Positions 5,125 to 62,200 of a stretch of 64,000 nt of DNA are shown piece by piece. A program made the position numbers and the translations under genes. The DNA is from Macrostomum lignano (taxonomy: Eukaryota), in the NCBI GenBank assembly GCA_002269645.1, contig NIVC01000176.1, forward strand, positions 620,001-684,000, given 5' to 3'. The notes beneath the pieces are model-generated. The model did not search any database. It had not been told where the DNA came from and worked only from the letters and a program-made list of their open reading frames with translations. Position 1 is the first letter of the stretch, and every line of letters begins with the position of its first letter.

Positions 5125-5531
5125 TTTTTCACCTGGAAATCAAGAGTTACACAAATTATATATAGGGAAAATTTTCTGTCCAATATATCTTAACCAAGAT
5201 CGCCTTGCTAAAGCCAAAGATACTTTAAACTATTGATAGTTGTCACCAACAGAAAGTGCTTATCTACTATTTGGTAGCAAAAGTAGCGCTTTTCGCTTTC
5301 ACTAAATATATAAATTTCAAAACATTTAAATTCAAAGCTTTTCTGAAGTTGCAACAATCGCCCTGGACTCTCTACAAGCGGACCCATTGATTTAACATCT
5401 TCATCCTGTTTGAAGCTGCACCCAAATCCAATGCGTGTGCATGGCGAGCAAGAGAAAACGGCTGGCGCCCCAACCAGGCTGAGAACCAGTTTGGCTCTCA
5501 TCTTGCCGCTTGTCTGACTGTCCTCTTTTTC

Positions 5532-6080
5532 TTACTGCTCTCTCATTGGCTGAGCCAGTTTGGGCCTGCGGCCCCCTAGGCTGAGTCTTATCCGTCTGAC
5601 TTTGACCTCTCTCCTTACTGCTCTCTCATTGGCTGAGCCAGTTTGGGCCTGCGGCCCCCTAGGCTGAGTCTTATCCGTCTGACTTTGACCTCTCTCCTTA
5701 CTGCTCTCTCATTGGCTGAGTCAGTTTGGGCCTGCGGCCCCCTAGGCTGAGTCTTATCCGTCTGACTTTGACCTCTCTCCTTACTGCTCTCTCATTGGCT
5801 GAGCCAGTTTGGGCCTGCGGCCCCCTAGGCTGAGTTTTATACGTCTGACTTTGACCTCTCTCCTTACTGCTCTCTCATTGGCTGAGTCAGTTTGGGCCTG
5901 CGGCCCCCTAGGCTGAGTTTTATCCGTCTGACTTTGACCTCTCTCCTTACTGCTCTCTCATTGGCTGAGCCAGTTTGGGCCTGCGGCCCCCTAGGCTGAG
6001 TCTTATCCGTCTGAATTTGACCTCTCTCCTTACTGCTCTCTCATTGGCTGAGCCAGTTTGGGCCTTGCAGCCCCTAGGCT
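5532..6080 (-). promoter_or_regulatory. 83-bp tandem repeat x7, each unit carrying a consensus CCAAT box (AGCCAATGAG on the minus strand), upstream of CDC23
   Basis: attgg occurs at 5545, 5628, 5711, 5794, 5877, 5960 and 6043 (exact 83-bp period). The repeat is seen directly; its regulatory role is inferred. Confidence 0.6.
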
Positions 6081-7360: not shown

Positions 7361-7559
7361 AGACAGATAGGCATGATAGGGGATAAAGAATGAGATTACT
7401 GCTGTGAAACAATCAGTTGAGTAGGTATTTATAAACTCTTATTTTTCAATCGAAATAAACACACAGGGTAGAAAATTTATACCAAAATGCACAGTAAACA
7501 TGCGACAACCTGTGAAAGGCTCTGACAAAACAAAACGAAAAACCAAACATGGTAAAGAA

Positions 7560-7764
7560 TGTAATGCCACTCTGGCCAGTACTAGCTTGAACATTGTATT
7601 AGCACGTACATGTCGCTACTCAACTTATGTACGTAAGGCACGCGGCTCAATTGTGCACGTTGCAATCAGATCGCTTCCAAATATAAATATCGTCTCACCC
7701 TACTTGGAGGGTTAAGGCTTTTTCTCGCACGCCACAAACACTGCCTGACTCCTGAGTCATTACA
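7560..7764 (+). repeat. 5' LTR
   Basis: Direct repeat of 11884-12088. Confidence 0.97.
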
Positions 7765-7785
7765 TTGGCGTCGCAAGGCTGAACC

Positions 7786-10700
7786 ATGGCCTTCCTACAA
7801 CTGCCGGCCCCAGGTAACTTTAGCATTAGAGACGACCCCCACTCCACAAGCAAGCGCTGGCAGGAGTGGTCATCCAACCTTCTACGCTACCTGGCGGCCA
7901 CGGGCATCACAAACGAGACACAGAAACGCCAGATCCTCCTATACACGGCAGGCAAAGAAGTAAGCGACCTGTATAGCGAGATCATAACAACAGAGACCGA
8001 CACAACAGAAGGCGAACCTACAGTCGAACCCACGGTCGACCAGCTGATCGCTCTGTTCACCAAGCATTTCCAAGGTCGCGACAACATTGTGTTTCTCCGC
8101 TACCAATTCCGCCAGTGCGTGCAGGACGAAGGCGAGTCGATAGACGCCTGGCACAGCAGACTCTGGAGCGCCTCGGAAGCCTGCCAGTTCGAGAGCCTAC
8201 GTTATTCGCTCGTCAGGGACCAAATTGTGGCCAGCTGCCGCAGCGAGTCGCTGAGGAAGCGGCTGCTGAACATCCCCAACATCAACCTGGCGGACACCCT
8301 CCAACTGGCCAGGACGCACGAGGCAGCAGAAAAGCAGGCGGCCATCATGTCCAGGACAGCGGCAGCCTCTGAGGAAGTAGCGCAGGTGCGCCGCCAGCGC
8401 TACCCGCCGCCGGAACTGTCGCGCCAGCCGCAGCCATCCGCGAAGTGCATCCGATGCGGCGAGTCGGGCCACAGGAGCTGCAACAGGGCGCAAGGCAAGC
8501 GGTGCACCAACTGCGGCAAGTTCAACCACCTGGCCAAGGCCTGCCTCAGCCGCTCGAAGATCAACGCGCTACAGCCCGAGCAAGACCAGCTTGCAGACCA
8601 GCCAGTCAACGAGGTGTTCTGCACGCTCAGCGGCAAGGACAATAGCGCCAAATTCCCCATCAGCATCAACGGTCAGCAGGTCTGCACACTGATCGACAGC
8701 GGAGCAAGCTGCAACGTACTGGACATGGCGACGTTCCGCAGAATTTGCCGCCGCGGCACGCCACTTGCGCCGTCCAGCACCAGAGTCTTCGCGCTCGGCG
8801 CCAGCGAGCCGCTGGAGGCAGCCGGTCAAACGACGCTCACCGTCAGGGCGAACCACCGCGAGCTGCAGGCGAACTTCATTGTCATCCGGAGCAGCTGCAC
8901 CCCAATCCTCGGCAGAGCGTCCAGCACGAAGCTCGGTATGCTGAGAGTCGGCCCAGAGGCCTGCACGAACTCGGCGGTGGTGGCCAGCCTGGCCAATCCA
9001 GCGAGATGCGAGGATCAGCACTTGCCTAAGCAGCTACAGCTTGAGAGCATCCTGGCCGACTTCAGCGACCGCTTTCAGGGCATTGGATGCGTGAAGGGCG
9101 TCACCATCACTATCAAGCTGAGATCAGATGCCAGCCCAGTTTGCCAACCGCCATCCCGAGTGCCAGTGCACCTCAGGGCGGCCGTCATCAAAGAGCTGGA
9201 AGAGCAGCTTGCCCTGGGAATCATCGAGCGGGTGCATGGGCCAACAGCCTGGTGCTCCAGGATGGTCGCGGTCCCGAAGGCCGAGCAGGGAGAGGTGCGC
9301 ATCACCCAGGACCTCCGCGAGGTGAACAAGTACGTCATCCCGGAGAAGCAGCCGATCCCCACATTCGAAGAGGTAACCGACGAAATGGCCGGATCGACGT
9401 ATTTTTCGGAGCTGGATGTCGCCAAAGCGTTCCACCAAATTGAAGTCGCCGAGGAGTCCAGGGATCTGCTGACGTTCTCCACGCCAATCGGGCTCCTACG
9501 GCTGCGCCGGCTCTGCATGGGCTACACATCCGCCTCCGAGATCCTCCAGCGGGTGATGTCCTCCGTCCTCAGCGGCCTGCCCGGCGTCCGCTGGGTGCAC
9601 GACGACATCCTGGTGTATGCGAAGAACATTGAGGAGCACAACCAGCGCCTGCGAGACTGCCTGGCTCGGCTGAAGGCCAGCAACATCACGCTGAACCCCA
9701 AAAAGTGCCGCTTCGCTCAGCGAGAGGTCGATTTCCTCGCCATGCGGCTGTCGGCAGTCGGCATTCACCCCAGCACCGAGAAAGTGGCGGCCATCAACAG
9801 TTTCAAGCGGCCGACCAACGCGACCGAGGTCCGCTCGTTCCTCGGCCTCGTCACCTTCGTCGCGCGCTTCATCAGCAACCTGTCCGACAGGGCTCGGCCA
9901 CTCCGAGAGCTGACCCGACAGGCCGCCGAGTGGACATGGGGTGAGCAACAGGAGGCCGCGTTCAAGGACATTAAGCAAACGATCGCCAGCAGCGAGGCGC
10001 TGGCATTCTTCAACAGCAAGCTTCCGACCCAGCTAATCGTGGACGCCAGCCCCACAGGCGTCGGCGCCATCCTCGCCCAAGTCCAACCTGACGGATCGAC
10101 GCGGCCGGTGGCGTACGCGAGCCGCAGCCTGAGCCCGACCGAGCAGCGCTACTCCCAGACGGAGCGGGAGGCGCTCGCGGTGAAGTACGGTGGCCTGAAG
10201 TTTCATCACTACCTCAGCGGCGGCGGCAACTTCAAGGTAATCACCGACCACAAGCCGCTGGTATCCCTGTTCAGCCCGGGGTCGCGGCCGCCGCCCCGCA
10301 TTGAGCGCATGGCGCTGCGACTGCAAGACCTGGTCTTCCAAGTGGTTTATCAACCCGGAGCCGGCAATCCGTCCGACGTCCTGAGCCGCCAGCCGCTGCC
10401 AATGCCGCCGAACAACGTCGGTGAGCAGGCGGATGCGATCTACGTGGCCACGGCAGTGCGGGCGGCCACCCCGGTGTCCATCAGCCTGACCATCATCAAG
10501 GCCGCCTCCGACCAAGATTCCACTGTCCAAGCAGCTCTGCACGCCATCCGCGGGAACCAGTGGGACAAGAGCGACACGCGCCTACAGGGACTGCACGGCG
10601 TGGCCCACGAGTTGTCCGAGCTGGACGGCCTGCTGCTGTGCCGCAGCCAACTGTACATGCCGACGGCTCTGCGGTACCGGTGCCTGCAGCTGGCCCACCA

Positions 10701-11769
10701 GGGCCACCAGGGCGTCAGAAAAACGCTGGACCGCCTACAACCGAAGGTTTGGTGGCCCGGCATGCGAGCATCCGTAGAAGCGCACGTGGCAGCCTGCATC
10801 AGCTGCCAGGCCTGCACCCGCGAGACCGCGCCGAAATCCACGCCACTCAAGCCGACCGAACTACCGGAGGGCCCCTGGCTCGAGCTGGGGCTGGACTTCC
10901 TCGGACCAGTAAGCGGCAAGTCGCTGCTCGTCTGCACGGACCACTTCTCCAGGTTCCCGCTCGTGGAGGTCATGCCCAGCACCACCGCCTCCGCCGTCAC
11001 CAAGGTGCTGCGCCGGTGGTTCAGCATCTTCGGGCAGCCGACAAAGGTAACTACAGACAACGGCCCGCCCTTTGCATCGGCCGAGTTCAGCAGCTTCCTG
11101 GCGGACCAGGGCGCCCGGCACCATCGAATCACGCCTCTCTACCCTCAGGCCAACGGCGCAACGGAGCGGTGCAACCAGGGGCTGAACAAGGCTATTCGCG
11201 CGGCGGTCCTCGAAGGTCGGGACTGGACGCTGGCCTTGGACGAATACCTGGCAGCGTACAGGCGCACTCCACACTGCGCCACAGGCGTCGCACCGGCTAG
11301 TCTGCTATTTGGCAGGCAAATCAACGACGTGATCCCGAGCCTCCAACACTCGCAGCCCATCGACGCGACAAGAGCGGCCATCGCCGACCGCGACCGCCAG
11401 GCCAAAGAGGAGATGAAGCGGCTCGCCGACCAACGCTCCAGGGCAGCAGACCACGCCATCCGTCCGGGCGACCGCGTCCTGAGGCGTCTGCAATCCCGGC
11501 AGAAGACCGACGCCTTCTACGAGCCAGTGCCATGGACCGTGGCCGAGGTCCAGGGCGACTCCCTGCTCATGCAGCGCGACGAGGTCGTCTGCCGCAGGCA
11601 CGCTACGCAGGTCAAGCGGCTGTCCGAGCAGCCTAAGCAGTCCGAAGGGCAGCCGCTCCAGCCGCCTGGCCCCCCTGAGCCCACGGAGCCGATCGCTGCC
11701 CGGCCGCATCCCCGGCAAGCAAAGGACCCGGAGAGGAACTACAAAGAGCCCGACCTGCGCAGAAGCTGA
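7786..11769 (+). CDS. Gag-Pol polyprotein (Gag with CCHC knuckles, aspartic protease, RT, RNase H, integrase)
   Basis: 1327-aa uninterrupted ORF: CTNCGKFNHLAKAC knuckle, LIDSGA protease, VHDDILV RT, VDAS RNase H, AHQGHQG...C-x2-C and LDF...TDNG...ER integrase. The PR-RT-RH-IN order is the gypsy order. Confidence 0.97.
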   Translation: MAFLQLPAPGNFSIRDDPHSTSKRWQEWSSNLLRYLAATGITNETQKRQILLYTAGKEVSDLYSEIITTETDTTEGEPTVEPTVDQLIALFTKHFQGRDNIVFLRYQFRQCVQDEGESIDAWHSRLWSASEACQFESLRYSLVRDQIVASCRSESLRKRLLNIPNINLADTLQLARTHEAAEKQAAIMSRTAAASEEVAQVRRQRYPPPELSRQPQPSAKCIRCGESGHRSCNRAQGKRCTNCGKFNHLAKACLSRSKINALQPEQDQLADQPVNEVFCTLSGKDNSAKFPISINGQQVCTLIDSGASCNVLDMATFRRICRRGTPLAPSSTRVFALGASEPLEAAGQTTLTVRANHRELQANFIVIRSSCTPILGRASSTKLGMLRVGPEACTNSAVVASLANPARCEDQHLPKQLQLESILADFSDRFQGIGCVKGVTITIKLRSDASPVCQPPSRVPVHLRAAVIKELEEQLALGIIERVHGPTAWCSRMVAVPKAEQGEVRITQDLREVNKYVIPEKQPIPTFEEVTDEMAGSTYFSELDVAKAFHQIEVAEESRDLLTFSTPIGLLRLRRLCMGYTSASEILQRVMSSVLSGLPGVRWVHDDILVYAKNIEEHNQRLRDCLARLKASNITLNPKKCRFAQREVDFLAMRLSAVGIHPSTEKVAAINSFKRPTNATEVRSFLGLVTFVARFISNLSDRARPLRELTRQAAEWTWGEQQEAAFKDIKQTIASSEALAFFNSKLPTQLIVDASPTGVGAILAQVQPDGSTRPVAYASRSLSPTEQRYSQTEREALAVKYGGLKFHHYLSGGGNFKVITDHKPLVSLFSPGSRPPPRIERMALRLQDLVFQVVYQPGAGNPSDVLSRQPLPMPPNNVGEQADAIYVATAVRAATPVSISLTIIKAASDQDSTVQAALHAIRGNQWDKSDTRLQGLHGVAHELSELDGLLLCRSQLYMPTALRYRCLQLAHQGHQGVRKTLDRLQPKVWWPGMRASVEAHVAACISCQACTRETAPKSTPLKPTELPEGPWLELGLDFLGPVSGKSLLVCTDHFSRFPLVEVMPSTTASAVTKVLRRWFSIFGQPTKVTTDNGPPFASAEFSSFLADQGARHHRITPLYPQANGATERCNQGLNKAIRAAVLEGRDWTLALDEYLAAYRRTPHCATGVAPASLLFGRQINDVIPSLQHSQPIDATRAAIADRDRQAKEEMKRLADQRSRAADHAIRPGDRVLRRLQSRQKTDAFYEPVPWTVAEVQGDSLLMQRDEVVCRRHATQVKRLSEQPKQSEGQPLQPPGPPEPTEPIAARPHPRQAKDPERNYKEPDLRRS

Positions 11770-11883
11770 TTGACTTGATTGATTGACTGTCTCTCAAATG
11801 GACTGCACATGCATGAACTGTTAGTCACTTTTTATGGTTCCCTTTGTGTTTTCACCGTTACTTTTAATCCACTCGAGGAGGAA

Positions 11884-12088
11884 TGTAATGCCACTCTGGC
11901 CAGTACTAGCTTGAACATTGTATTAGCACGTACATGTCGCTACTCAACTTATGTACGTAAGGCACGCGGCTCAATTGTGCACGTTGCAATCAGATCGCTT
12001 CCAAATATAAATATCGTCTCACCCTACTTGGAGGGTTAAGGCTTTTTCTCGCACGCCACAAACACTGCCTGACTCCTGAGTCATTACA
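11884..12088 (+). repeat. 3' LTR
   Basis: Direct repeat of 7560-7764. Confidence 0.97.
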
Positions 12089-14935: not shown

Positions 14936-15262
14936 TTAAGGTTTAGTACTATCAAAGAACACGACATCCTGGGAGCCAACAACTTCGGCATAATGCACAG
15001 TGTCCTTGGGAACCAGCACCCTGTCACCGGGTTCCAGCACAACCTCTTCGCCAAACATTCTGAACAGAAATCTGCCAGACACGATTGCGTCCATTTTGTC
15101 AACGGGGTGAGTGTGATCGGGGAACACGGTGCCGGGGCCGAAGGTGTACCGGCAGCTGGAGTAGCCAAGGGAGCGGAGCTTCCGCTGCATGGCCTCTGAG
15201 GACAGCGGGCCGTCCGAGCTGGCGTCCCATTTAAATACGTTGAGGCTGCGCGACGAAGTCAT
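14936..15262 (-). CDS. Single-exon small cupin-domain protein (108 aa)
   Basis: MTSSRSLNVFKWDASSDGPLSSEAMQRKLRSLGY...PGTVFPDHTHPVDKMDAIVSGRF...GDRVLVPKDTVHYAEV. Contains cupin motif 1 (HxH) and motif 2 (G-x5-P-x4-H). An acceptor-like ttgcag lies 31 nt upstream of the ATG. Confidence 0.8.
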   Translation of the reverse strand: MTSSRSLNVFKWDASSDGPLSSEAMQRKLRSLGYSSCRYTFGPGTVFPDHTHPVDKMDAIVSGRFLFRMFGEEVVLEPGDRVLVPKDTVHYAEVVGSQDVVFFDSTKP

Positions 15263-15329
15263 AACGCTATTGTTGCAAAGGGTTTCAGTGCGCCTGCAAT
15301 TGGCAGTGTAAGTCTGAATTAGATTTGAT

Positions 15330-15640
15330 AGCTCAGCAACTGAGGATCTGGGAGCCTGACCCAGAGACTCAGGATCTGGGAGCCTGAGCCAGCAACTGAG
15401 GATCTGGGAGGCTGACCCAGAGACTCGGGATCTGGGAGCCTGAGCCAGCAACTGAGGATCTGGGAGGCTGACCCAGAGACTCGGGATCTGGGAGCCTGAG
15501 CCAGCAACTGAGGATCTGGGAGGCTGACCCAGAGACTGAGGATCTGGGAGGCTGACCCAGAGACTGAGGATCTGGGAGGCTGACCCAGCAACTGAGGATC
15601 TGGGAAACTGGCTCAGCAATTGAGGATCTAGGAGGCTGGT
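15330..15640. repeat. 28-bp-unit minisatellite (agcaactgaggatctgggaggctggccc family)
   Basis: Tandem copies; the same family occurs at 55185-55880. Confidence 0.9.
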
Positions 15641-15830
15641 CCCCTGACAAAACATAAAAAACAAAGAAGACTATATGTGAAAAACGGAAAACAAAGATAT
15701 TTACATATATTTATTGCGCATTTCAGTATTGAAAGTTTAAAGCAGGAGAAATTACACTATATTTTGCACGCAAGCATTCAGCTACATGTATATGCAAAGC
15801 GAAATGCAGTCCCTATCGATCCGACCTGAT

Positions 15831-22879: not shown

Positions 22880-37070
<14,191 letters not shown>

Positions 37071-39655: not shown

Positions 39656-40274
39656 ATATTTTTCTTCTGGTGCTATTTAAATATCTTCATCAACACTTCA
39701 AAGCAATTAGAACCATACAGTACAGACTAACAATTTGGGATTCTATCTGTCTATCCCCTTCCTTGAAATCGTGTCCCATATGAGTCTATAATTGACAAAT
39801 ACTACCAGCAGAATTTTGTCCACGTGGAATATCCTCTTCAAATAGAATGTGACCAGCAGTGGCCCGCATCTTCTATTACCTGAGTGTGGAGAATCCCATC
39901 TTATAAAATCCTATTTATATTTATAAGGACCCGCATCCGCGATGCGTGCTTGAAGAAAAGACCAACAGACAGTTTGAGAAGAAATTTCGGAGCTTTGAGT
40001 TTAGAGCTCAAAGAAGACGAATGATGATGGTAGCTAAAATTGTGTGTCTAATTGCTCATCTGCGGTGGAAGTTATGGGGATATCATGTATAGGGGTTAGA
40101 GCTAAGGCAGCAGGGCGTGTTGCGCGCGTGGAGTCTCACTTAGCTTTTAGAAGAGTGGGGTGACTCACTTGCTCGCTTCAGTGGCGCGTGGTACAGTGCA
40201 AGGTGATCTTGAAACAAAGAATCTGGATTGTCACCCTGTTTTACACCACAATGATGCAGATTTGATAGGAGCTC

Positions 40275-41425
40275 AAAACTTCACGATAAGCTCTCGAAAC
40301 TTCACGATAAGCTCTTGAAACTTCACGATAAGCTCTCGAAACTTCATTATAAGCTCTCGAAACTTCACGATAAGCTCTCGAAACTTCACGATAAGCTCTC
40401 GAAACTTCACGATAAGCTCTTGAAACTTCACGATAAGCTCTCGAAACTTCACGATAAGCTCTCAAAACTTCACGATAAGCTCTCGAAACTTCATGATAAG
40501 CTCTCGAAACTTCATGATAAGCTCTCGAAACTTCACGATAAGCTCTTGAAACTTCATGATAAGCTCTCGAAACTTCATGATAAGCTCTCGAAACTTCATG
40601 ATAAGCTCTCGAAACTTCACGATAAGCTCTTGAAACTTCATGATAAGCTCTCGAAACTTCACGATAAGCTCTCGAAACTTCACGATAAGCTCTTGAAACT
40701 TCACGATAAGCTCTCGAAACTTCATGATAAGCTCTCGAAACTTCATGATAAGCTCTCGAAACTTCATGATAAGCTCTCGAAACTTCATGATAAGCTCTCG
40801 AAACTTCACGATAAGCTCTCGAAACTTCACGATAAGCTCTTGAAACTTCATGATAAGCTCTCGAAACTTCACGATAAGCTCTCGAAACTTCACGATAAGC
40901 TCTCGAAACTTCATGATAAGCTCTCGAAACTTCATGATAAGCTCTCGAAACTTCACGATAAGCTCTCGAAACTTCATGATAAGCTCTCGAAACTTCACGA
41001 TAAGCTCTCGAAACTTCACGATAAGCTCTCGAAACTTCACGATAAGCTCTCGAAACTTCATGATAAGCTCTCGAAACTTCACGATAAGCTCTCGAAACTT
41101 CACGATAAGCTCTCGAAACTTCACGATAAGCTCTTGAAACTTCATGATAAGCTCTCGAAACTTCACGATAAGCTCTCGAAACTTCACGATAAGCTCTTGA
41201 AACTTCATGATAAGCTCTCGAAACTTCACGATAAGCTCTCGAAACTTCACGATAAGCTCTCGAAACTTCATGATAAGCTCTCGAAACTTCACGATAAGCT
41301 CTCGAAACTTCACGATAAGCTCTCGAAACTTCACGATAAGCTCTCGAAACTTCACGATAAGCTCTCGAAACTTCACGATAAGCTCTCGAAACTTCACGAT
41401 AAGCTCTCGAAACTTCATGATAAGC
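40275..41425. repeat. 21-bp minisatellite (aaacttcacgataagctctcg)
   Basis: Tandem copies; source of spurious ORFs 40315-41454 and 40462-41511. Confidence 0.95.
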
Positions 41426-41505
41426 TGCGGAAGTGTAGCTCGTCTAACAAATAGTAGGAAAATAAACGTCAACAAAAACATAAAAAGTAAACTTTGTTTA
41501 ATTCT

Positions 41506-41546
41506 AGCCAACGCGTTTCGTCAAACACAAGACGTCGTCAGGGCAA
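41506..41546 (-). ncRNA. Minimal type I hammerhead ribozyme motif (Penelope/retrozyme-like)
   Basis: Minus strand reads UUGCC-CUGACGA-C-GUC(uuguguuu)GAC-GAAA-CGCG-UU-GGC: core, stem II, palindromic stem III and a short stem I. Confidence 0.7.
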
Positions 41547-41743
41547 ATTCAATCAACCTAAGATCACACCACCAATATATTTAAGCAAAAATCACTGTAC
41601 AGTCCAGAGGCAGGTCAAAACAGTTTTTGTTTCAAAACAGAACTTGTTTCAATTGAAAACTACGTACATTAATTTATATTGTGTATTCAACTTATTACAG
41701 GTATATTTATTCAACTGTTTATTCAAATTTTCTATTTTATTAC

Positions 41744-41783
41744 TGCCCTGACGATGACCTACAAAGGTCGAAATGCATTGGCA
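41744..41783 (+). ncRNA. Minimal type I hammerhead ribozyme motif (Penelope/retrozyme-like)
   Basis: UGCC-CUGACGA-U-GACC(uacaaa)GGUC-GAAA-UGCA-UU-GGCA. Confidence 0.72.
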
Positions 41784-42564
41784 ATTAAATTAAAGCAAAT
41801 AAAATCAAGTTAATGTTTGTTCTCTCATTCATTTTATTCCTATTTATTAAAGCGAGCTACTCTACCAGAAGCTTGAAAAAGAAACTTTCGAAAATCGAGG
41901 GTTGCCCTAGGATAAGATGGCGACTCAACCAGATTCTCTATGAAAAATCTCCTTGAACAATCAATTCAGTCTTGACTTATTACGCGGCCACTGGGTGAGC
42001 CTAGGTGCAACAGCAACCCTTCATCTCCTCTTCAAGTTCTTGTATCGTAGACTATTCTTAGAAAAAACCCGCAGATTTTTAAAACCGGGCCTTCATTTCT
42101 TAGCCCCCCCCCCCCTACTCATCCCTCAGGGGGGCGGCAGCTCCTCAGACCGACCCGTTCCTACCTGCCACTTGTAAGAGGCGCGCATGCGGGGCGGGAT
42201 CTGCGGGGAGAACGGAGGAGCCCAACTGTTCATCTCGCCTCGCTGCCACCTTTGTGGCTTTCTGCTGGTTGATGTGGGTGGCCCTTGTAGAGCCCCTCCG
42301 GGGGATGGGGGGGCTGGTCCTGTGGTGGGCGTGAATCAGTCAGTCCCCCTAGCAACTAAGAGCTTCGCTTGCTTGCAAATTTCTGATTCTAATTCTTATC
42401 AATCTCCAATATCCCAGTTGCAATATGGGGCCTATGGGGTTAAATTCGTTGTAAAAAATTCGATTGGAGAAGTTTTGAATCATTAATAATATTGCTCATT
42501 TGACATAATTATGAGACATTGTGGTGAAAATTTTGTTGATAACTTTTTAAGAGGAATGACAACG

Positions 42565-43210
42565 AGAGACAGGGGAAAGACAGGGAGAGACAGGGGAGAG
42601 ACAGCGGAGAGACAGCGGAGAGACAGCGGAGAGACAGGGCAAAGACAGGGCAAAGACAGGGGAGAGACAAGGGAGAGACAGGGCAAAGACAGGGGAGAGA
42701 CAGGGCAAAGACAGGGGAGAGACAGGGCAAAGACAGGGGAGAGACAGGGGAGAGACAGGGCAAAAACAGGGGAAAGACAGGGCAAAGACAGGGGAGAGAC
42801 AAGGGAGAGACAGGGCAAAGACAGGGGAGAGATAGGGGAGAGACAAGGGAGAGACAAGGGAGAGACAGGGCAAAGACAGGGGAGAGACAGGGCAAAGACA
42901 GGGGAGAGACAAGGGAGAGACAGGGGAGAGACAGGGCAAAGACAGGGGAGAGACAGGGCAAAGACAGGGGAGAGACAATGGAGAGACAGGGGAGAGACAG
43001 GGGAGAGACAGGGCAAAGACAGAGAGCGACAGGGGAGAGACAGGGCAAAGACAGGGGAGAGACAAGGGAGAGACAGGGCAAAGACAGGGGAGAGACAGGG
43101 CAAAGACAGGGGAGAGACAAGGGAGAGACAGGGCAAAGACAGGGGAGAGACAGGGCAAAGACAGGGGAGAGACAATGGAGAGACAGGGGAGCGACGGGGG
43201 AGAGACAGCA
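42565..43210. repeat. A/G-rich 12-bp-type repeat (agacaggggag / agacagggcaa)
   Basis: Tandem copies. Confidence 0.9.
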
Positions 43211-44214
43211 GAGATGGCTGGAGCAGAAACGTAAATCAACATCAGTTTTAAAGTGGTTTAACATAGACCCACGCGTCAAACCGAAAAGCATAATTAGTAG
43301 TCAGCTCGCACCATCAATATCAAGTTTCGGTCACAAGGTACCCTTGTATGTCATCACTCATTACATATCTTACATCACAAAAATGACATCGTAAATCTGT
43401 ATATGAAGGACAGAAAATTTCAATTGATTTCTACAACGACACAATTTCGGCAACATGTTGCAGTGGGTATATAATTAATAAATACAACAAGCTACTGAAA
43501 TTCATCTTAATGATTAAACATGAATCGCCTTACGAACTACCTGACAGATGGGTGAAGGCACTCTATAGTTGAAGTAATGAAAATATGGAATATGATAAAA
43601 TTGCTGTCCAACATATTAATAATCACTTTGCAAAGAGAAGTCTTGATAGAGTTATATTATCTCAAGATTGCAGCTTTATTAGACAGAAAATGATACAATA
43701 TCTGAATCCCAATGCAGCTCGACTAAAAAAAACTTTTCATTTCCTCAACAGATGGTTTATTATAAACAGCATCGACTCGCGAAACGCTCAAGCCGTCTGT
43801 TCTTTGATTTTTTCTCTGCTTTTTTTCAACCCACTGTGTCTGTCGGTCCTTCTTTCTCAATGGTCCGCATCTCCCTCAATCTCCTTCTAGTCTGTCTGAT
43901 CAGGAAAAAAAATTTCCGTTTCAATGCTTGGCTTCTAGAAGCAACAGAAACACGTAAAGTGATTGCAGAATTTGATGGGAAGAATTGAGAGGGTCCCACA
44001 GCAGCTCCCTCACCTGTCCTAAAAGTCAGTCAAGGATTTACGAAACACGAGCATGAATATTATTATTGCTAAATGTTGTTGAGCTTGTCTTTCACTCTCT
44101 TGAAGCAGAAAAATCTGCAAATTTCTGGCCCTTGGCTTGCCTCCCACTTGAGGGGAATCTGGCACAGACAGTTGGAATCAGTGAGCCTACTTGATCTAGC
44201 CTACTCACTCTAAA

Positions 44215-44840
44215 TCCCATCTCCATCCCCCTAACTAAATCCCATCTCCCTCTAACTAAATCCTATCTCCCTCTATCTAAATCCCATCTCCCTCTAACTA
44301 AATCCTATCTCCCTCTATCTAAATCCCATCTCCCTCTATCTAAATCCCATCTCCCTCTAACAAAATCCCATCTCCCTCTATCTAAATTCCACCTCCCTTT
44401 ATCTAAATTCCATCTCCATCCATCTAAATCCCATCTCCTTCCATCTAAATCCCATCTCCCTCTATCTAAATCCCATCTCTCTCTAACAAAATCCCATCCC
44501 CCTTACTCTAAATTCCATCTCCCTTACTCTAAATTCCATCTCCATCCATCTAAATCCCATCTCCCTCTATCTAAATCCCATCTCCCTTTATCTAAATCCC
44601 ATCTCCCTTACTCTAAATTCCATCTCCCTTACTCTAAATTCCATCTCCCTTTATCTAAATCCCATCTCCCTCTATCTAAATCCCATCTCCCTCTATCTAA
44701 ATCTCATCTCTCTCTATCTAAATCCCATCTCCCTCACTCTAAATCCCATCTCCCTCTATCTAAATCCCATCTCCCTCTATCTAAATCCCATTTCCCTCTA
44801 ACTAAATCCCATCTCTCTCTATCAAAATCCCATTTCCCAA
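44215..44840. repeat. ~21-bp minisatellite (aaatcccatctccctctatct)
   Basis: Tandem copies; the same family is inverted at 48125-48450. Confidence 0.9.
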
Positions 44841-48124: not shown

Positions 48125-48450
48125 CTAGCCTTCGATGGAGGGAGATGGGGTTTAGATTGAGATAGATGGGATTTGGAGTGAGGGAGATATGCTTTAGATG
48201 GAGGGGGATGGGATTTAGATGGAAGGAGATGAGATTTAGAGTGAGAGAGATGGGATTTAGATGGAGGGAGAAGGGACTTAGAGTGAGGGAGATGGGACTT
48301 AGAGTGAGGGAGATGGGATTTAGATAAAGGAAGATGTGATTTAGACAGAGGGAGATGGGACTTAGAGTGAGAGAGATGGGATTTAGATAAAGGAAGATGT
48401 GATTTAGACAGAGGGAGATGGGACTTAGAGTGAGGGAGATGGGATTCAGA
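48125..48450. repeat. ~21-bp minisatellite (gagggagatgggatttaga-type)
   Basis: Reverse-complement family of 44215-44840. Confidence 0.85.
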
Positions 48451-50640: not shown

Positions 50641-53600
50641 ATGCGTCACGTCACAGACCCCCAGCTGGTCCCCCCGTATCTCCCAGCAGCCGCCTCGACC
50701 AACCAGAACGCGGCAGCCAATCCCAGGTCCCCCTTCGGCCCGCATGCCTTTAGGAGAGGAGAGGAGAGGAGAGGAGAGCCGGTGGAATCTTATTATAAAT
50801 ACGACAAGACACGCTTCTCCAGCCTCGAAAGCCACAGACTGAACTCGAATCATTTTGAGAAGCATCGAACTGGGCAGTTTGAGTTCTCACAACAAAAGCC
50901 TGACTTGTCCTCATTAAAGGGTAGACAAAAAAAGAGCATGTCGGCCGATTTCTGTGTCCGATCGCTGCTGGCAATGAGTTCAGCAGCCACCTCGTCGGCG
51001 GTGAAGTCGACAGTCAGCCGTCAGGAGCATCAGCAGCTCGCCCGCCTCCGTCGAGACAGCGGCGACTGCAGCCGAAGTAGCAGCAGCAGCTGCTGCGCGC
51101 CCAACGACATCGAAGCGGAGGCCGAGCTGACTGAGACATCGCCGCCGCGGTTTGAACCGTCAGCAGCGTCGGCGCTGCTTCTGACCGGCACGCCGTCGAT
51201 GCTGGCAGGCGCCGCAAAGCCGATCGCTGCTGTCGCCGCCGCCAACGCCGCTACAACGTCCAGCTCCGACGAGGTGAACATCGAAGATGAATCAATCAAT
51301 GCAGACGACGAGAAGGTTGAAGAGACTGCAAGTCCCGAGCAGCAGCCTCAGGCGCCGCCGGCGGTCGACACCAGCAACAACATGGCGCACCTGTGCGAGC
51401 TGCTGAAGCAGAGGGTCAGCCAAGACCTCAACAGAATTGTCGATGCAATGATGACTCAGCTGGTGCAGAATCTGTACTCAGCTAATGCTCAGCAGCAGCA
51501 GCACCAGCCGCAGTTTACCCTGCCTCCTGTCCACCGGCTGACTCAGCAGCAGTCTTCGTCGATCTTCTATCCTCCTTTGTTCATGCCGCCGCCGCCGCCG
51601 CCTCCGCCGCCGCCGCCGCCGCCGCCGATGTTTCAGCCGCAGCAGCTGCAGGACTCCTGGCGGCAGTTCGCCTGGCCTGCTGGCGCAGCTACAGCCGCGG
51701 CTGATTCAACGGCGGCCGCGGGCACAGCTGACGCCTGCGACGATGAGACGCCGAAACGGAAACGGGCGAAGGTGAGAAATTAATTATCAATAATTACCTG
51801 GTATCAATATATAATATATTAATAGTTAGCCTGATTGTTTATTACTTAATATTGAATTCCCCCATACTCTATACCAGATCACCGACATCCGGTGTCCGGC
51901 TCCAGTTTATGCTACGGCGACTGCCGCCGCGTCTGACTGCAGTCGGGCCTCGACGCCAAATTTCCCAGCGGCGCCTTCGCATCGTCAGCAGCAGACGGCA
52001 GGCGATGAGCTCAAGGTTGGTGCTATTGCTGTGATTCTCTGGCTGTTTACCGTGATTCCTCCTCTCCCCTCTCACCCTCTCTCTCCCCGTCTCCCTACTC
52101 TCACCCTCTCTCTCCCCGTCTCCCTACTCTCACCCTCTCTATCCCCGTCTCCCTACTCTCACCCTCTCTCTCCCCGTCTCCCTACTCTCACCCTCTCTCT
52201 CCCCGTCTCCCTACTCTCACCCTCTCTCTCCCCGTCTCCCTACTCTCACCCTCTCTCTCCCCGTCTCCCTACTCTCACCCTCTCTCTCCCCCGTCTCCCT
52301 ACTCTCACCCTCTCTCTCCCCGTCTCCCTACTCTCACCCTCTCTCTCCCCGTCTCCCTACTCTCACCCTCTCTCTCCCCGTCTCCCCACTCTCTTACCAT
52401 TTCTTCTCTTCTCCCTAATCTCTCTCACCCTCTTTCCCGGTCTCCTTACTCTCACCCTCTCTACCCGTCTCCCTACTCTCACATTTTCTAATATCCAACT
52501 CCCACTTCCATTCGTTCATCTTGTTGCTCCCATTCTCTTTCTGATCCCTTCGAAAGTTATCTTAGTCACCCCCACTTAAAGATTTCCCAAACCGCCTTGC
52601 GCTGTTTCCCCCTCGATCTCTCTCCCCTGTTGATATTGTTTGCCTTCCATTCCCAATGCCCAGCATGCTCGCTCCTCATCCTTCAATTAAAAATCTTACA
52701 GACCACCCAACCTTCCCTTAGAAGCAGAACCAGCTCACAAATCTCAGAGACCCGGAGATAAAAAAGAAGAGAGGGGGACCACTTAAATAAGGGAAAAAAC
52801 TTCTCAAGTGCCTGCTCAGTGCTCACTACTCTAACTCGCAATCAAATATTTGATCTGGTCTATCACCCAGATTTCAGCCTTGCCCCCACCCCTCTGAGAC
52901 ACTGCGTCTTCTCAAACTTCTTATGTTTGCTTGGCAATCAATTTCAATTTAAAAACACACTATGCTTTTGTTTCATATGGAATGTCAACAATAACCTGAC
53001 CCCCCCGGGAGCTGCTTGGTCCAGTCAGATGGCCCAATGGGTCTTTGTGTGCTTTTTCTATACCAACCCATGGTTGAAGCGAGCAAGCTAAACTTTTTTA
53101 GGGGAGGCCACGTATTGGATTAAACAATTGAAAGTAGAGTCTCAAAATTCACTTAAAATATAGATTTGGGCAGAGCGAGATTTGGGATCTGAGGAGCGAA
53201 ATTTGGGATTCATTCTGTACTCCGTTCTAAACAATGTAAAATAGTACATCACCATCTCACCCTTCCCAAAAAACAAACCGCTCATGCAGACGTTCACGCT
53301 GTCGCCGGTTCACCTGCGCAAGGCCAAGCTGATGTTCTTCTACACCCGCTATCCCAGCACGGCAACGCTGCGAACTTTCTTCCCGGATGTGCACTTTAAC
53401 AAGAGCAACACGGCCCAGGTGGTCAAGTGGTTCTCCAACTTCCGGTGAGCAAAATAATCTACTATATTCTAATTTGAGAATTTTTCTGAAAATAGTGATT
53501 ATAAAATATATCAGGGATTTTGGATAAGGATCAGAGAAGTAAGGACATCATTGGGATTTGGGAATTGGAATCATTGGGATTTGGGAATTGGAATCATTGG

Positions 53601-54528: not shown

Positions 54529-55184
54529 GCGTCAACGCGTTTACTACTCTACTGTCAAGTAGCCAAGTAGAGCAAATTGTTGACAAAATTTATTTGACTA
54601 GACAAAACCTCTAAATTTCCACTCAGGCTTCATAATGACCATTTATAGGCGCCAAAGCATGATTATAGCTAGCTATTGTAGCGATTTGTAGGGATCGCTC
54701 TGTTAATCCACCAAAGTCACCCAAATCCGTTGCCTTGCATCAAAATAGTTTGTATATTTTCTTTGATTATAAGAGCATTTTCTGGTCCAATTTGTGTTTC
54801 TGTATTATTTTTCTCATGCACTTTTCAATTTGCTCTATTTCGCAACTTTGTGCGATAAGTTTGTTCAGTACGTGAAACTGAGGAACTTGCTTTTGCACGC
54901 GAATTTCTTGTTGCTTTTTTGTGTCTGCACCTCCCAATTTCTCTCAGTGTTCTGCCGCTGTTTTTCTATCGAGTTTTTCGTCGCGAAATTTTTCTGTTCG
55001 AATTTTTGTTCATCGCTTCAATTGCAAATCGAATTCTGCGTCGCCCGTCACTTTGTTGCATTGCGTATTATTAAATTATACTACTAATAGTAGAGTTTCA
55101 AGCGAAAATCGCAAAAAGTTAAATGTGAAAATGTGTCCACTGGTAAATTCTTTTTGTAAATCTATAACTTGCCGCAAACTGCCG

Positions 55185-55880
55185 GCCCAGCAACTGAGGA
55201 TCTAGGAGGCTGGCCCAGCAACTGAGAATCTGGGAGGCTGGCCCAGCAACTGAGGATCTGGGAGGCTGGCCCAGCAACTGAGGATCTGGGAGGCTGGCCC
55301 AGCAACTGAGAATCTGGGAGGCTGGCTCAGCAACTGAGGATCTGGGAGGCTGGCCCAGCAACTGAGGATCTGGGAGGCTGGCCCAGCAACTGAGGATCTG
55401 GGAGGCTGGCTCAGCAACTGAGGATCTGGGAGGCTGGCTCAGCAACTGAGGATCTGGGAGGCTGGCCCAGCAACTGAGGATCTGGGAGGCTGGCCCAGCA
55501 ACTGAGGATCTGGGAGGCTGGCCCAGCAACTGAGGATCTGGGAGGCTGGCCCAGCAACTGAGGATCTGGGAGGCTGGCCCAGCAACTGATGATCTGGGAG
55601 GCTGGCCCAGCAACTGAGGATCTGGGAGGCTGGCCCAGCAACTGAGGATCTGGGAGGGTGATGGCCCAGCAACTGAGGATCTGGGAGGCTGGCCCAGCAA
55701 CTGAGGATCTGGGAGGCTGGCCCAGCAACTGAGGATCTGGGAGGCTGGCCCAGCAACTGAGGATCTGGGAGGCTGGCCCAGCAACTGAGGATCTGGGAGG
55801 CTGGCCCAGCAACTGAGGATCTGGGAGGCTGGCCCAGCAACTGAGGATCTGGGAGGCAGGCCCAGCAACTGAGGATCTGG
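55185..55880. repeat. 28-bp minisatellite (agcaactgaggatctgggaggctggccc)
   Basis: Tandem copies; same family as 15330-15640. Confidence 0.95.
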
Positions 55881-57333
55881 GACGTGTTATCTGTAAGTTT
55901 GAGCTGCAGAATAAAACAAAGAGAAGAAAACTTTGCAATCGTGATTTATGCGTTAACGCGCCGACACTATTAATATAGTAATTACGATAATAGTACTCAT
56001 AAGTAGTTAACAGTAAAAGCGCTTCGTGTTTTCCATTTTTAATGCATAAATAAATAATTATAAGAATAAATCAGTAACGTCATATCATTAGTTTCCGAGG
56101 GGTATAGGAAGGCAAATATGTACACAATAGTGAATAACACGTTTAACAAAAGCAAGCCAACTTTTACTAACATGATTAAAAGACATTTTTTAAGTAATTA
56201 GCAAAATTAAATAAATACGCGAATTTAGCTACTAAGTAATAAGTAGTACAATTAGCAATTTTGCACTTAATGTGGTGAATATCAGAAGAAATAAAATGAG
56301 TCAGAGAAGAGATTGCTGAAACAGCTCGGACAAAAAATTTCCCAGATCCCAAAGGGTGATAAAGTAATCATTGTTTAGAGGAATTAAATTTGGGCCAGTG
56401 AGGGAATGTCTATCCCTATTATCAGTAAAAATATTGCAATTGTTTAAATAAATAGCTTAACGGAGTTAATTTAATAAAACAAAAAACTCTCAATAACACC
56501 GGAAAATAAGAACTAACGAATTGCTTAATAAAATATTGAATATTAATAAGTGTGCACTACTGGCAAGGGTATAACGTGCTTGGAATTGCTATTTTTGACA
56601 TAGTAATTCAGAAATATTTATTTGATTTAGTAGATAATGTAGTGCAATAAATATTAGAATTATTTGCCTCATAAATATGTAAAAGTACGTCACTAAGGCA
56701 TATAAAAATTTAACGGAGCAATGAAAAATAAACAAACAAGCCAATAAATTAAATCTTTATAATTATTCTTTATATAATAAGCAATAATTAAACAAACAAC
56801 AGTTCAATATTACTTACTAATTCCGTATGCACTTACCAGTATAAATGTGGGACGGTCACATTTGAAGGTCACAATGGAGGGACACATGTGTTACCGTTGT
56901 TTAAGGGTCCGTCCCACATTACAGAAAGTGTGTTATTCAATAAAAAAGATGAATAAACCAATAAAGCTGATGAAGGCTTAGAAAACAGGTAAGCATCTCA
57001 GGCTACTAACCGCAACCGGCTCTGCTTAACTTACAAGCGTTGACAGTAAATCTAAGTTCTTGCTAATGATTGAAGTGTGATTTTTTTGAAGGGAAAGACG
57101 GAGCCAAATGAAAAGTTACAAATGGAGCTACTTATTAGTAGTGAATTTAAATTTGTTTCGGAATTTGAACAAAACTTCTGAGAAAAAACAGACACAAGCA
57201 GAGGCGACGGCAAAAAAGCGAATCCAGTGTAGAGAGAGAGAGGGGGGGGGGACACGGGGCTCGGGTGGATGGGAGGCATCGGCGAGGTCAAATCAATAAA
57301 TTTATCAATATTAATACATAAACAAATAATGAA

Positions 57334-59286: not shown

Positions 59287-62200
59287 CTAAGTCTTGGACG
59301 CGGCCGATTCTTTTCTAAGAAACTCCCTCGATTCGAAGTCGGCCAACCTGGTCGGCTCGGGCACCCGATAGCGGCAGCAGTGGCCGACAAGCCAGACCGC
59401 AGTTGACAGGGAGATCATGTGACCGCAGCTGATGTACACCGGGTTTTTTACTGACGCGTCGGGCACGTGGGCGCAGCCAATCACGGCGCCGCTCTCGCCC
59501 TTGATATAGTAGTCTCTGAGGTGCAAATGAGCGCGAATGTTATTGTATCATTGATACGAGTATTTACTTATTTAAAATTTGGCCATCTTATTGGGATTCT
59601 GAGACTTTTATGGGCTATTTGGGATCTTAGAACTCATCTTGCTCGCAATTTGGGATTTTAAGACTCATCCTGAGCAGTTTGTGATTTTAAGACTCATCTT
59701 GAGCAGTTTGGGATTTTAAGACTCATCTTGAGCAGTTTGGGATTTTAAGACTCATCTTGAGCAGTTTGGGATTTTAAGACTCATCTTGAGCAGTTTGGGA
59801 TTTTAAGACTCATCTTGAGCAGTTTGGGATTTTAAGACTCATCTTGAGCAGTTTGGGATCCCGGAACTCATCTTGCTTGCATTTGGGATTTGAAGACTCA
59901 TCTTGAGCAGTTTGACATTTTAAGACTTATCTTGAGCAGTTTGGGATTTTAAGAGTCATCTTGAGAAGTTTGGGATCTCGGAACTCATCTGGCTCGCAAT
60001 TTGGGATTTTAAGACTCATCTTGAGCAGTTTGGGATTTTCAGACTCATCTTAAGCAGTTTGGGATCTTCAGACTCATCTTAAGCGCAGTTTGGGATCTTG
60101 GAACTCATCTTGAGCAGTTTGGGACCTTGGAACTCATCTTGAGAAAAGGCCTTCGAAACTTTTCCGAGAAACAATGTGTCAACTTGTTCCGATCATAGCG
60201 TGTGTCATGAAATCAAGTTTAACTTTTAACATCCTGAATTTGGACCCCGTATACCGAATAACACTGCAATCCTGACGCTTAAAACCCTGGTAAAGGGCTT
60301 AGGATGGGGTTTAAGTATGGTGAGGGTGTCGTAAAAGCTTAGGGGTCGTGCCAGAGTCGCCGCAGAATCACTGAGTTGCGTCTAAAGCGCATCTGCATCA
60401 CTTTACAAATTAGAATCGCATTTTGCATTTATAAAAAATCTATTCAGCCTACTTAAATTAGAAGAAATTTGAGCGCTAACACTGACGACTATTGGACAAT
60501 GGAACTATAGAAGTTTGAGTCGTTAAAAAAAGTCACAAGAGTCACCCCAGACTCGCTAGAGCAGGAGTCTGCAAACTTTTTTTTACCTCAACGACCAGAT
60601 AGAGAACCTAAAGCATGATTGCGGGTCAGAGGAGGGGAGGGAGAGGGGAAATGGAATAGAGAACATAGAAGAAAGGAGAGGCGAGGAAAAAATGAGACGA
60701 GATGAGGAGAGAGAAGAGGAAAGGAGAGGGGAAGAGGAGAGAAGAGACAAAAGAGGAGAAAAGAGAGGAGACAGGAGAGAAGAGAAGAGAGAGGAGACAG
60801 CAGAGGAGAAAGGAGACAGTAGAGGAGAGAGGAGAGAGTAGAGGAGAGGAAAGAGGAGAGAGGAGAGGAGAGGAGTGGAGAGAGGAGAGAAGAGGAGAGA
60901 AGGGAGAAGAGAGGAGAGGAGTGACGAGACAGCAAAGAAAAAAGGAGACAGTAGAGGAGAAAAGAGAGGAGAGAAGAGAAGAGATGAGACAGAAGAGAGG
61001 AGGAGAAGAGAGAAAAAGAGGTGATTAGAGAAATGAGAGCTGAAAAGAGACACAAACCTTGAGCGGGCCGGATAGAGAGGCTCCGCAGGCCGCATGTGGG
61101 CCGCGGAGCGGAGTTTGCCAACCCCTGCGGCTGCGCTAGAGGCACTAGTGACAGTGAGTCTTGTCACCGTGACGTTTTCAACGTTGTGTAAGGTTTGGGA
61201 TCATGCTTGGGCGCAACCTAGGGATTCACCCGGCCGTTTCTATTGGCAACACACACATGTAAGTCGCTATTGGACGGAATAGTAGTCACGTGACTGCTCT
61301 CAGCCAATGGCGACTTACATGTGTGTGTTGCCAATGGAAACGGCCGGGTGATTCCCAAGGTTGCGCATGTATGAAATTGGGATCGGCGGTCAATAGTGAA
61401 ACTCTGACAATTTATCGATTCTAACTATGCCACTAACCTGTTGCCGGCCTCCTTAACCAGCTTTCGCACCTGCCTCTGGTCGAGCCCGTCAACATGGAAG
61501 AAGCTCTTAGCCGTGCCCACAGTCGGTAGGCCGGCCAGCACGCCAACGTGGCAGGCCAAACCGAATCCGCGCGGGTGCAAGGTGCCATTGCCGTCAAGTA
61601 GCAAAGCCTGCGGCATCAGCTCCGGCTTTGTAGCGCGCAGCTCGTCCAACAGTTCAAGCACCGGTGGTGCCTCGCGGAAGCTGAGAAATCCTGGCACGTA
61701 TGGATGCGAGACTTTGACTTGGCGACAGATTTTGTGCACTGGGCTGAGATCGGGCAGGCTGAGCACAACTAAGCTGGCGCAGGCGGTCTCTGAGTCGCCT
61801 TTGACAAATGACAGATCGGCGCCGGCCACTAGCCGCAGGCAGTGATTGGCGCCCATCGGGCAGGACAAGCTGGGGTTGTTCAGTTCACTGGCGGATGGAC
61901 AGTGGCTGACTAAGCGCCTGGCTTGTTGCCATGGCAACTCGTCGATTAATTTCAGCTGACGCTTCAGGTCTAGTTGAAGCCTGTTAAATTATTTTGTGAA
62001 TAGAAAGTGTAGATCAAAATAGACTGCCATACCCGAATTCATACATGCGCAACCTCCCTGATATACACCAGCCGCGCGACTTCCCTATGAAAGAAACAAG
62101 CAAAATCAAAGTAAGGGGATGTGAATTTAAGAGTCAAAATGGAGCCTGAAGCATTGGGTCCCGATTTCTCTACACCAATCCCTTCATTTGGAGCCAAATA

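Follow-up and report, generated by a model that had tools for sequence, protein, structure and literature searches.

How did two hammerhead ribozyme motifs come to lie back to back, one on each strand, in the genome of the flatworm Macrostomum lignano? The pair sits in a 64,000-nucleotide stretch of contig NIVC01000176.1 (GenBank assembly GCA_002269645.1, positions 620,001 to 684,000 of the forward strand), which we call the window and to which all M. lignano coordinates below refer. An earlier reading of these letters by a model (the original prediction) had described two complete minimal hammerheads about 200 bp apart and had offered as their source an inverted pseudo-long-terminal-repeat remnant or a small non-autonomous element. 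This proved to be the right frame. In our analysis, the pair probably represents two severely 5'-truncated 3' ends, placed head to head, of diverged members of a Penelope-like element (PLE) family or of a family that depends on PLEs for its mobility.

Copy A lies on the minus strand (41544 to 41507) and copy B on the plus strand (41744-41783), with their sense directions pointing outward and 199 nt between the motifs. Read along the minus strand, copy A has a stem I of GCC (41544-41542) and GGC (41509-41507) that encloses the core CUGACGA (41541-41535), an extra C at 41534, a stem II of GUC (41533-41531) and GAC (41522-41520) closed by the 8-nt loop uuguguuu, the G12 A13 A14 triplet (41519-41517), the helix III palindrome ACGCGU (41516-41511) and U17 (41510), with the predicted cut between 41510 and 41509. 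Copy B follows the same order on the plus strand: its stem I (UGCC, 41744-41747, with GGCA, 41780-41783) encloses CUGACGA (41748-41754), an extra U at 41755, a stem II of GACCU (41756-41760) and AGGUC (41765-41769) with the loop ACAA, G12 A13 A14 (41770-41772), the palindrome AUGCAU (41773-41778) and U17 (41779), and the predicted cut falls between 41779 and 41780. Both copies carry the catalytic core of a type I hammerhead (C3 U4 G5 A6 N7 G8 A9, G12 A13 A14, A15.1-U16.1 and H17) surrounded by three helices, helix I being open. Helix I measures 3 bp in copy A and 4 bp in copy B, and helix II 3 and 5 bp; helix III is in each case a 6-nt palindrome that can pair solely between molecules. The details listed in the original prediction, namely the core with its extra base, the differing but fully paired stems II, the two palindromes, the UU cleavage site and the GCC/GGC stem I, are all present, and the plus-strand stem II extends further than it had stated, to 5 bp.

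We then scanned both strands of the window with a minimal-hammerhead descriptor in which helices I and II each had to reach 3 bp, CUGANGA was followed by no more than one extra base, and GAA by an A...U palindrome with no loop and then by any base but G at position 17. Copies A and B were the sole matches, and 300 dinucleotide-preserving shuffles of the window produced none. Even with one defect allowed, the scan returned only these two copies from the window and nothing from 20 shuffles. The search with hammerhead models that the original prediction had proposed as a check did not go in its favor: at the gathering score, Rfam reported nothing anywhere in the window, neither copy included. A local scan of 501 nt gave a full-length match of copy B to the Hammerhead_1 model (RF00163) at 18.8 bits (E=0.09), compared with a gathering score of 34, and copy A gave no match locally even at E<=10. 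A local match to SNORA48 was discounted as spurious. The Rfam model assumes longer stems and a helix III closed by a loop, so sub-threshold scores are expected for ribozymes that have no helix III loop and 3-bp stems; this is still a genuine failed test.

Beyond what their own descriptor imposed, Cervera & de la Pena (2014, PMC4209133) listed hallmarks of the minimal hammerheads of PLEs: A9 and 10.1 are separated by a base, 10.1-11.1 is a G-C pair, and helix III is palindromic and loop-less. The M. lignano pair shows all of them: the unpaired base between A9 and G10.1 is C 41534 in the minus copy and U 41755 in the plus copy, G10.1 pairs with C11.1, and the loop-less palindromic helix III implies action as a dimer. 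The likeness to the published PLE ribozymes extends to the type I topology, to a helix I that is short and open and has no clear loop 1, to U17, to sequence variability with compensatory changes, and to the opposite-strand layout, which is found in another flatworm, Schistosoma mansoni, where pairs of minimal hammerheads on opposite strands lie 100-700 bp apart (PMC4209133). The same study reported many isolated minimal hammerhead motifs and ascribed them to truncated PLEs, as holds for most published minimal hammerheads, and found that the families are highly variable within one genome and that cleavage is weak and dimer-dependent, being poor even for tandem dimers. On their sequence, we conclude that copies A and B are genuine minimal hammerheads of the PLE type, the class to which the original prediction had assigned them.

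The resemblance between the two arms does not stop at the ribozymes. Compared with its own reverse complement, the region gave an inverted self-match (BLAST, E=1e-14), and a MAFFT alignment of the arms showed homology from just upstream of helix I to an identical shared block, CGAGCTAC (minus 41442-41435; plus 41853-41860). Between ribozyme and block, the tails are identical at 50 of 72 positions (69%) with six gap columns, in agreement with the homologous 3' tails noted in the original prediction. The left-arm tail (41422-41506, minus) combines AT-rich sequence with the conserved block CGAGCUAC (41442-41435) and what may be a hairpin; the right-arm tail (41784-41898, plus) likewise has an AT-rich stretch, the block (41853-41860) and a hairpin. 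The homology probably runs on for about 30 nt past the block (AGCTT ... TTTCGA), to judge from a colinear extension of the alignment with P ~0.013. An nhmmer search of the left tail with a profile of the arms gave E=9e-36, which serves as a check of coordinates only, as the profile was built from these very arms.

At 68-95 nt past the predicted cut, each arm could fold into a hairpin whose stem, GAGCU/AGCUU, is 5-6 bp long and whose AC/C-rich loop measures 10-11 nt. In the left arm, GAGCU (41441-41437) would pair with AGCUU (41426-41422) on the minus strand around the loop ACACUUCCGC, in a local fold only; in the right arm, CGAGCU (41853-41858) and AGCUUG (41870-41875) enclose the loop ACUCUACCAGA in the minimum-free-energy fold of the plus strand. 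Measured from the cut, block and hairpin start at 68 nt in the minus arm and at 74 nt in the plus arm, and the homology gives out at about 110 nt. The hairpin is weak, and its stems are identical in both arms, so that it shows zero covariation.

We next asked how the two ribozymes had diverged. Twelve positions of the 38-nt ribozyme differ between the arms; the identity, 68%, is the same as that of the tail. All 12 differences fall at the extra base, in loop II or in stems where pairing is restored, and the constrained positions are all identical. Two double compensatory changes stand out, U-A to A-U at 10.2-11.2 and C-G to U-A at 15.2-16.2, the covariation thus comprising two pairs from two sequences. 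We simulated neutral decay of two lineages from a common ancestor at the divergence of the tail (d=0.39) and found that a descriptor-valid ribozyme was kept in ~1% of cases per lineage and in both lineages at a frequency of ~1e-4. The arms therefore stem from two diverged, once-mobile copies: they diverged with the ribozyme under selection, as members of an active family, and not by decay of one duplicated insertion. A single template would be expected to leave near-identical arms, allowing for age; the arms are 69% identical and their ribozymes compensated. The earlier view that structure had been conserved while sequence diverged was therefore well founded.

For comparison, we searched with the Poseidon_Ac protein (PAc) of Anolis carolinensis and recovered genuine PLEs from Sitophilus oryzae (L011) and Tenebrio (L010). 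The Sitophilus locus has an open reading frame (ORF) with RVT_1 and PLE-specific domains, and carries the motif CCU CUGAAGA u GCUAGC..GCUAGC GAA ACGU U AGG twice, at 5312-5272 on its minus strand and 8305-8345 on its plus strand, pointing outward. These ribozymes lie about 3 kb apart within inverted arms that are 99-100% identical and flank the intact reverse transcriptase (RT) ORF; the distance from cut to arm end is 56 nt, or 86 nt if a 30-nt tail is counted. The Sitophilus and M. lignano loci share the ribozyme architecture, the head-to-head arms, the outward hammerheads and the ends tens of nucleotides past the ribozyme. They differ in that the M. lignano arms are only ~69% identical, are both cut just upstream of the ribozyme and leave 199 nt between the motifs. 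The Tenebrio PLE also has head-to-head arms, of 1031 nt. A side observation at the Sitophilus locus is that an 88-nt piece (5189-5276) is repeated at 5773-5860, just upstream of the ORF; starting inside the hammerhead and including the 30-nt tail extension, it is a very short third copy and shows how small PLE 3' fragments can be.

The layout itself is not new. Inverted, 5'-truncated partner copies of PLEs have reportedly been described before (Evgen'ev & Arkhipova 2005). An inverted 5'-truncated copy adjoining the element is a typical feature of PLE insertions, in which the hammerhead lies near the 3' end and is optionally followed by a 30-40-bp tail (Craig et al. 2021, PMC8557442). Given this standard pattern and the opposite-strand pairs known since 2014 (PMC4209133), the arrangement is less unusual than the original prediction implied. 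Layout, ribozyme class and PLE link have all been published already, and the locus reveals no new mechanism.

Work on PAc suggests how such fragments may arise. The protein cleaves and extends both DNA strands, and its reverse transcription initiates internally, at an AC-rich stem-loop ~85-92 nt past the hammerhead cut; insertion in vitro does not need the hammerhead, and a tail of 30-40 nt is optional (Frangieh et al. 2024, PMC11167929). The PAc hammerhead resembles the M. lignano pair in having AUG at A9-U-G10.1, a palindromic helix III (ACGU) and a 3-bp helix I. The position of its initiation stem-loop is matched by the M. lignano hairpin with its AC/C-rich loop 68-95 nt past the cut, a likeness that, for a weak hairpin with no covariation, is a hint only. 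We also observed that in the plus ribozyme A9, G10.1 and the extra U between them (41754-41756) spell AUG, as at the start of the Poseidon_Ac ORF and in the Sitophilus PLE ribozyme. In PAc this AUG opens an 846-aa ORF, whereas in the M. lignano plus arm only 19 codons follow it and the minus arm has ACG.

We therefore favor a history in which each M. lignano fragment would consist of a minimal hammerhead of the PLE type and, behind it, a 3' module of ~75-110 nt whose end lies close to the conserved CGAGCUAC hairpin. Because PLE reverse transcription starts ~90 nt downstream of the hammerhead and the enzyme can nick and extend both DNA strands, short insertions would keep a hammerhead plus ~100 nt, and paired copies would have their 3' ends, and with them their ribozymes, pointing outward. 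As to the order and number of insertion events, we infer that either a single insertion used two templates or a second one landed beside the first. The source family would have kept its ribozyme under selection while mobile, and the two arms would be diverged members of it. The spacer between the ribozymes (41545-41743), which is AT-rich, has an imperfect central palindrome (41618-41649) and encodes no Pfam domain in any of six frames, would presumably hold the 5'-truncated heads of both copies. Upstream of the ribozymes the two arms show no significant homology to each other; the central palindrome alone appears there.

Several results weigh against a PLE origin of the pair, and we consider them together. 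Pfam detected no RT or GIY-YIG domain in any of the six frames over 41420-42570 and 43200-44230, and Poseidon_Ac had no tblastn match across the whole window, confirming the earlier statement that no RT ORF is nearby. The pair thus differs from PLE-borne minimal hammerheads, which are defined in part by their location in the pseudo-long terminal repeat (pLTR) of an element with RT and GIY-YIG domains. Stem II is 3-5 bp long in the M. lignano pair and 7-8 bp in the PLE minimal hammerheads of S. mansoni, and both copies score below the Rfam threshold. In both arms the start of homology all but coincides with the ribozyme, rather than falling at two random truncation points, and no target-site duplication could be defined at the pair. 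No further copies of arm or ribozyme appeared in 135 kb of M. lignano DNA (the window and three further loci). Finally, among the 120 entries listed of 3215 matches to the Poseidon_Ac RT-endonuclease region, in which other taxa dominate, there was no PLE from M. lignano.

Other searches bear on the family more loosely. We looked for a paralogous locus by way of a neighboring exon and found only distant homologs (34-55% identity), with no hammerhead in the flanks of the three loci examined. Exact-protein look-ups returned no record for the gypsy ORF of the window or for the ORF that runs over the left arm. Two matches to the core pattern, one viral and one metagenomic (L001 and L003), have no stem II and were set aside as chance matches in GC-rich, prokaryote-like DNA. 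Three others (L002, L004 and L005) are real minimal hammerheads from unknown eukaryotes, but were rejected as members of the same family, their tails being unrelated. Of these, L002 is a metagenome sequence in which the ribozyme lies downstream of the end of a GIY-YIG-like ORF; other matches to the core pattern have perfect, different stems II. NCBI labels one of the PLE RT matches, on a 2.6-kb contig, a partial protein of Escherichia coli; this is almost certainly eukaryotic contamination of a bacterial assembly. A telomere-associated PLE of the endonuclease-minus kind was rejected as the source of the pair, there being no telomeric repeat beside the ribozymes.

Would the ribozymes cleave? 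As monomers, neither copy takes the hammerhead fold, which is predicted at -4.6 and +0.5 kcal/mol for the two, compared with minimum free energies of -12.0 and -13.5. For a homodimer of copy B, the predicted minimum-free-energy structure (-28.5; designed fold -25.9) is a classical double hammerhead, in which helix III forms between the two molecules and the helix I strands are swapped. Copy A fares worse: its double hammerhead is predicted at -18.5 kcal/mol versus -29.4 for an alternative duplex, so that the hammerhead fold is strongly disfavored. The predicted copy B homodimer resembles the double hammerheads of tandem satellite and viroid transcripts (Forster et al. 1988, as cited in PMC4209133). 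Unlike such transcripts, the M. lignano locus has no second copy on the same strand, and dimerization would need a transcript from elsewhere. The palindromes ACGCGU and AUGCAU cannot pair with each other. With one dimer-dependent copy per strand and no possibility of cross-pairing, self-processing of transcripts from this locus alone is unlikely, and the ribozymes here are probably inert. The original prediction that bidirectional transcription would be self-processed on both strands thus found no support.

Some of the points raised above would suit a different history, in which the whole inverted structure of ~480 bp is one non-autonomous, PLE-dependent element, mobilized as a unit like a retrozyme but with inverted ribozymes, and in which the arms diverged from each other during propagation of the family under selection on both ribozymes. 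Such long-term selection on a mobile RNA fits diverged arms that keep valid ribozymes and a shared 3' block, and one composite element would also accommodate homology that begins at the ribozyme in both arms and the lack of coding capacity. A recent preprint argues that animal retrozymes derive from the pLTRs of PLEs and are non-autonomous (Li et al. 2026, bioRxiv 10.64898/2026.07.22.740005). Non-LTR retrozymes (Cervera & de la Pena 2020, PMC7229834), which are thought to be derived from pLTRs and dependent on PLEs (PMC7229834; Li et al. 2026 preprint), resemble the pair as small non-coding units having type I hammerheads with a small palindromic helix III. They carry, however, tandem ribozymes on the same strand, form circular RNAs and typically have canonical hammerheads with loop-loop contacts, whereas the M. 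lignano ribozymes are inverted and of the minimal type. The known retrozymes are direct tandem repeats; non-LTR retrozymes repeat units of ~170-400 bp on the same strand, and at this locus we found no direct repeat of the unit, only the inverted pair. A single transcript of the composite would hold one sense and one antisense ribozyme, leaving one active per RNA, and no second copy of it turned up in the 135 kb of M. lignano DNA. As the ordinary mechanism of PLE insertion fully explains the inverted layout, we consider a composite element unlikely.

Alternatively, the pair could descend from one ancient twin insertion with identical arms, whose two ribozymes host selection then kept in place as an exapted bidirectional RNA-processing site. 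Genuine PLE twin insertions do begin with identical arms, and purifying selection acting in place could, in principle, also yield compensated divergence. Such a site, however, would have to work with a minus copy that is thermodynamically poor and with two copies that each have no dimer partner on the same strand. It would also lie among minisatellites with no exon or domain nearby, and no hammerhead flanks the distant homologs of the neighboring exon. The variability of PLE hammerhead families within a single genome (PMC4209133) explains the diverged arms more simply, and we judge exaptation very improbable. That the motifs are not ribozymes at all, and that an inverted repeat of other origin (a miniature inverted-repeat transposable element with long terminal inverted repeats, or a palindromic duplication) spelled a hammerhead-like string by chance, is hardly credible: Rfam calls neither copy at threshold and leaves the minus copy unscored, the stems are very short and the covariation comes from two pairs in two sequences, but no shuffle of 300 matched the descriptor, the extra base, the G10.1-C11.1 pair and the palindrome, none of them imposed by the core, match PLE minimal hammerheads and the ribozyme of a genuine PLE, all 12 differences avoid constrained positions, and the predicted homodimer of copy B is a textbook double hammerhead.

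Returning to two truncated PLE 3' ends as the preferred origin, we examined what surrounds them. The pair sits in a 1.1-kb island of unique sequence between two tandem arrays, one with an 11-bp unit (42564-43208) and one with a 21-bp unit (40272-41426, minus strand). The latter has the unit AGCTTATCGTGAAGTTTCGAG, present in 55.0 copies with 95% matches according to Tandem Repeats Finder, and its start at 41426 coincides exactly with the 3' strand of the left arm's terminal hairpin. The stretch past the CGAGCTAC block is the first unit of this array in the left arm; the arm alignment places its single-copy counterpart (AGCTT...TTTCGA...CGAG) at 41870-41898 on the plus strand in the right arm. 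Because this stretch is repeated in the left arm but single-copy in the right, we read the array as an expansion of the left arm's last 21 nt, as which it appears. In our proposed history, the expansion into a 55-unit minisatellite would have come after insertion. The array might instead have been laid down at insertion itself, by a telomerase-related PLE RT recopying the element's last 21 nt before moving on. We give this idea only a slim chance; if true, PLE insertion would be one source of the minisatellites that form ~37% of the window. Possible arm homology beyond the minisatellite (40240-40196 versus 41914-41958) is colinear but not significant, being reached by 14-54 of 300 shuffles, and we make no claim for it.

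Tandem arrays are a general feature of the window. We counted 44, covering 36.8% of it, mostly with units of 11-36 bp and lengths of 0.3-1.3 kb, spaced roughly every kilobase between exons and repeats. Two arrays 40 kb apart on the same strand (15334-15638 and 55184-55882) have a common 28-bp unit with 96% identity, and two others 3.3 kb apart (44226-44838 and 48134-48450) have a common 21-bp unit with 90% identity as reverse complements. Judging from these units, arrays that have them in common, or elements that carry arrays, seem to be dispersed repeats.

The window also holds an apparently young and intact Ty3/gypsy retrotransposon (7557-12088), whose 208-nt long terminal repeats (7557-7764 and 11881-12088) are 100% identical. 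Its polyprotein ORF (7786-11769) runs uninterrupted for 1327 aa and is 100% identical to an annotated M. lignano protein, with related copies also placed on assembly GCA_002269645.1; from this we take the window to be nuclear DNA of M. lignano, a free-living worm. A UniProt gene model fuses this polyprotein with neighboring host exons, from 3836 to 24539. Host exons on the minus strand belong to ANAPC8/Cdc23 (3502-5124), a cupin-domain protein (14936-15664) and endonuclease V (61425-61937), and a plus-strand run (23269-35334) of alanine/glutamate-rich coiled-coil exons matches nothing in Pfam. The ribozyme pair follows the last of these coiled-coil exons after ~6 kb and precedes the next long ORF (50641-51783) by ~9 kb.

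These results extend PLE-type minimal hammerheads to a flatworm used as a model of regeneration, for which we found no earlier report in the literature searched. For genome annotation, the lesson is that such relics are PLE 3' ends and not genes, and that Rfam thresholds miss them. The pair also amounts to a small natural experiment: one position in three differs between the arms, yet none of the catalytic or pairing requirements of the ribozyme has been lost, and a 3' block is still shared. We argue from this that the parts of the elements' RNA under selection are the hammerhead and the 3' initiation module, although insertion in vitro can do without the ribozyme.

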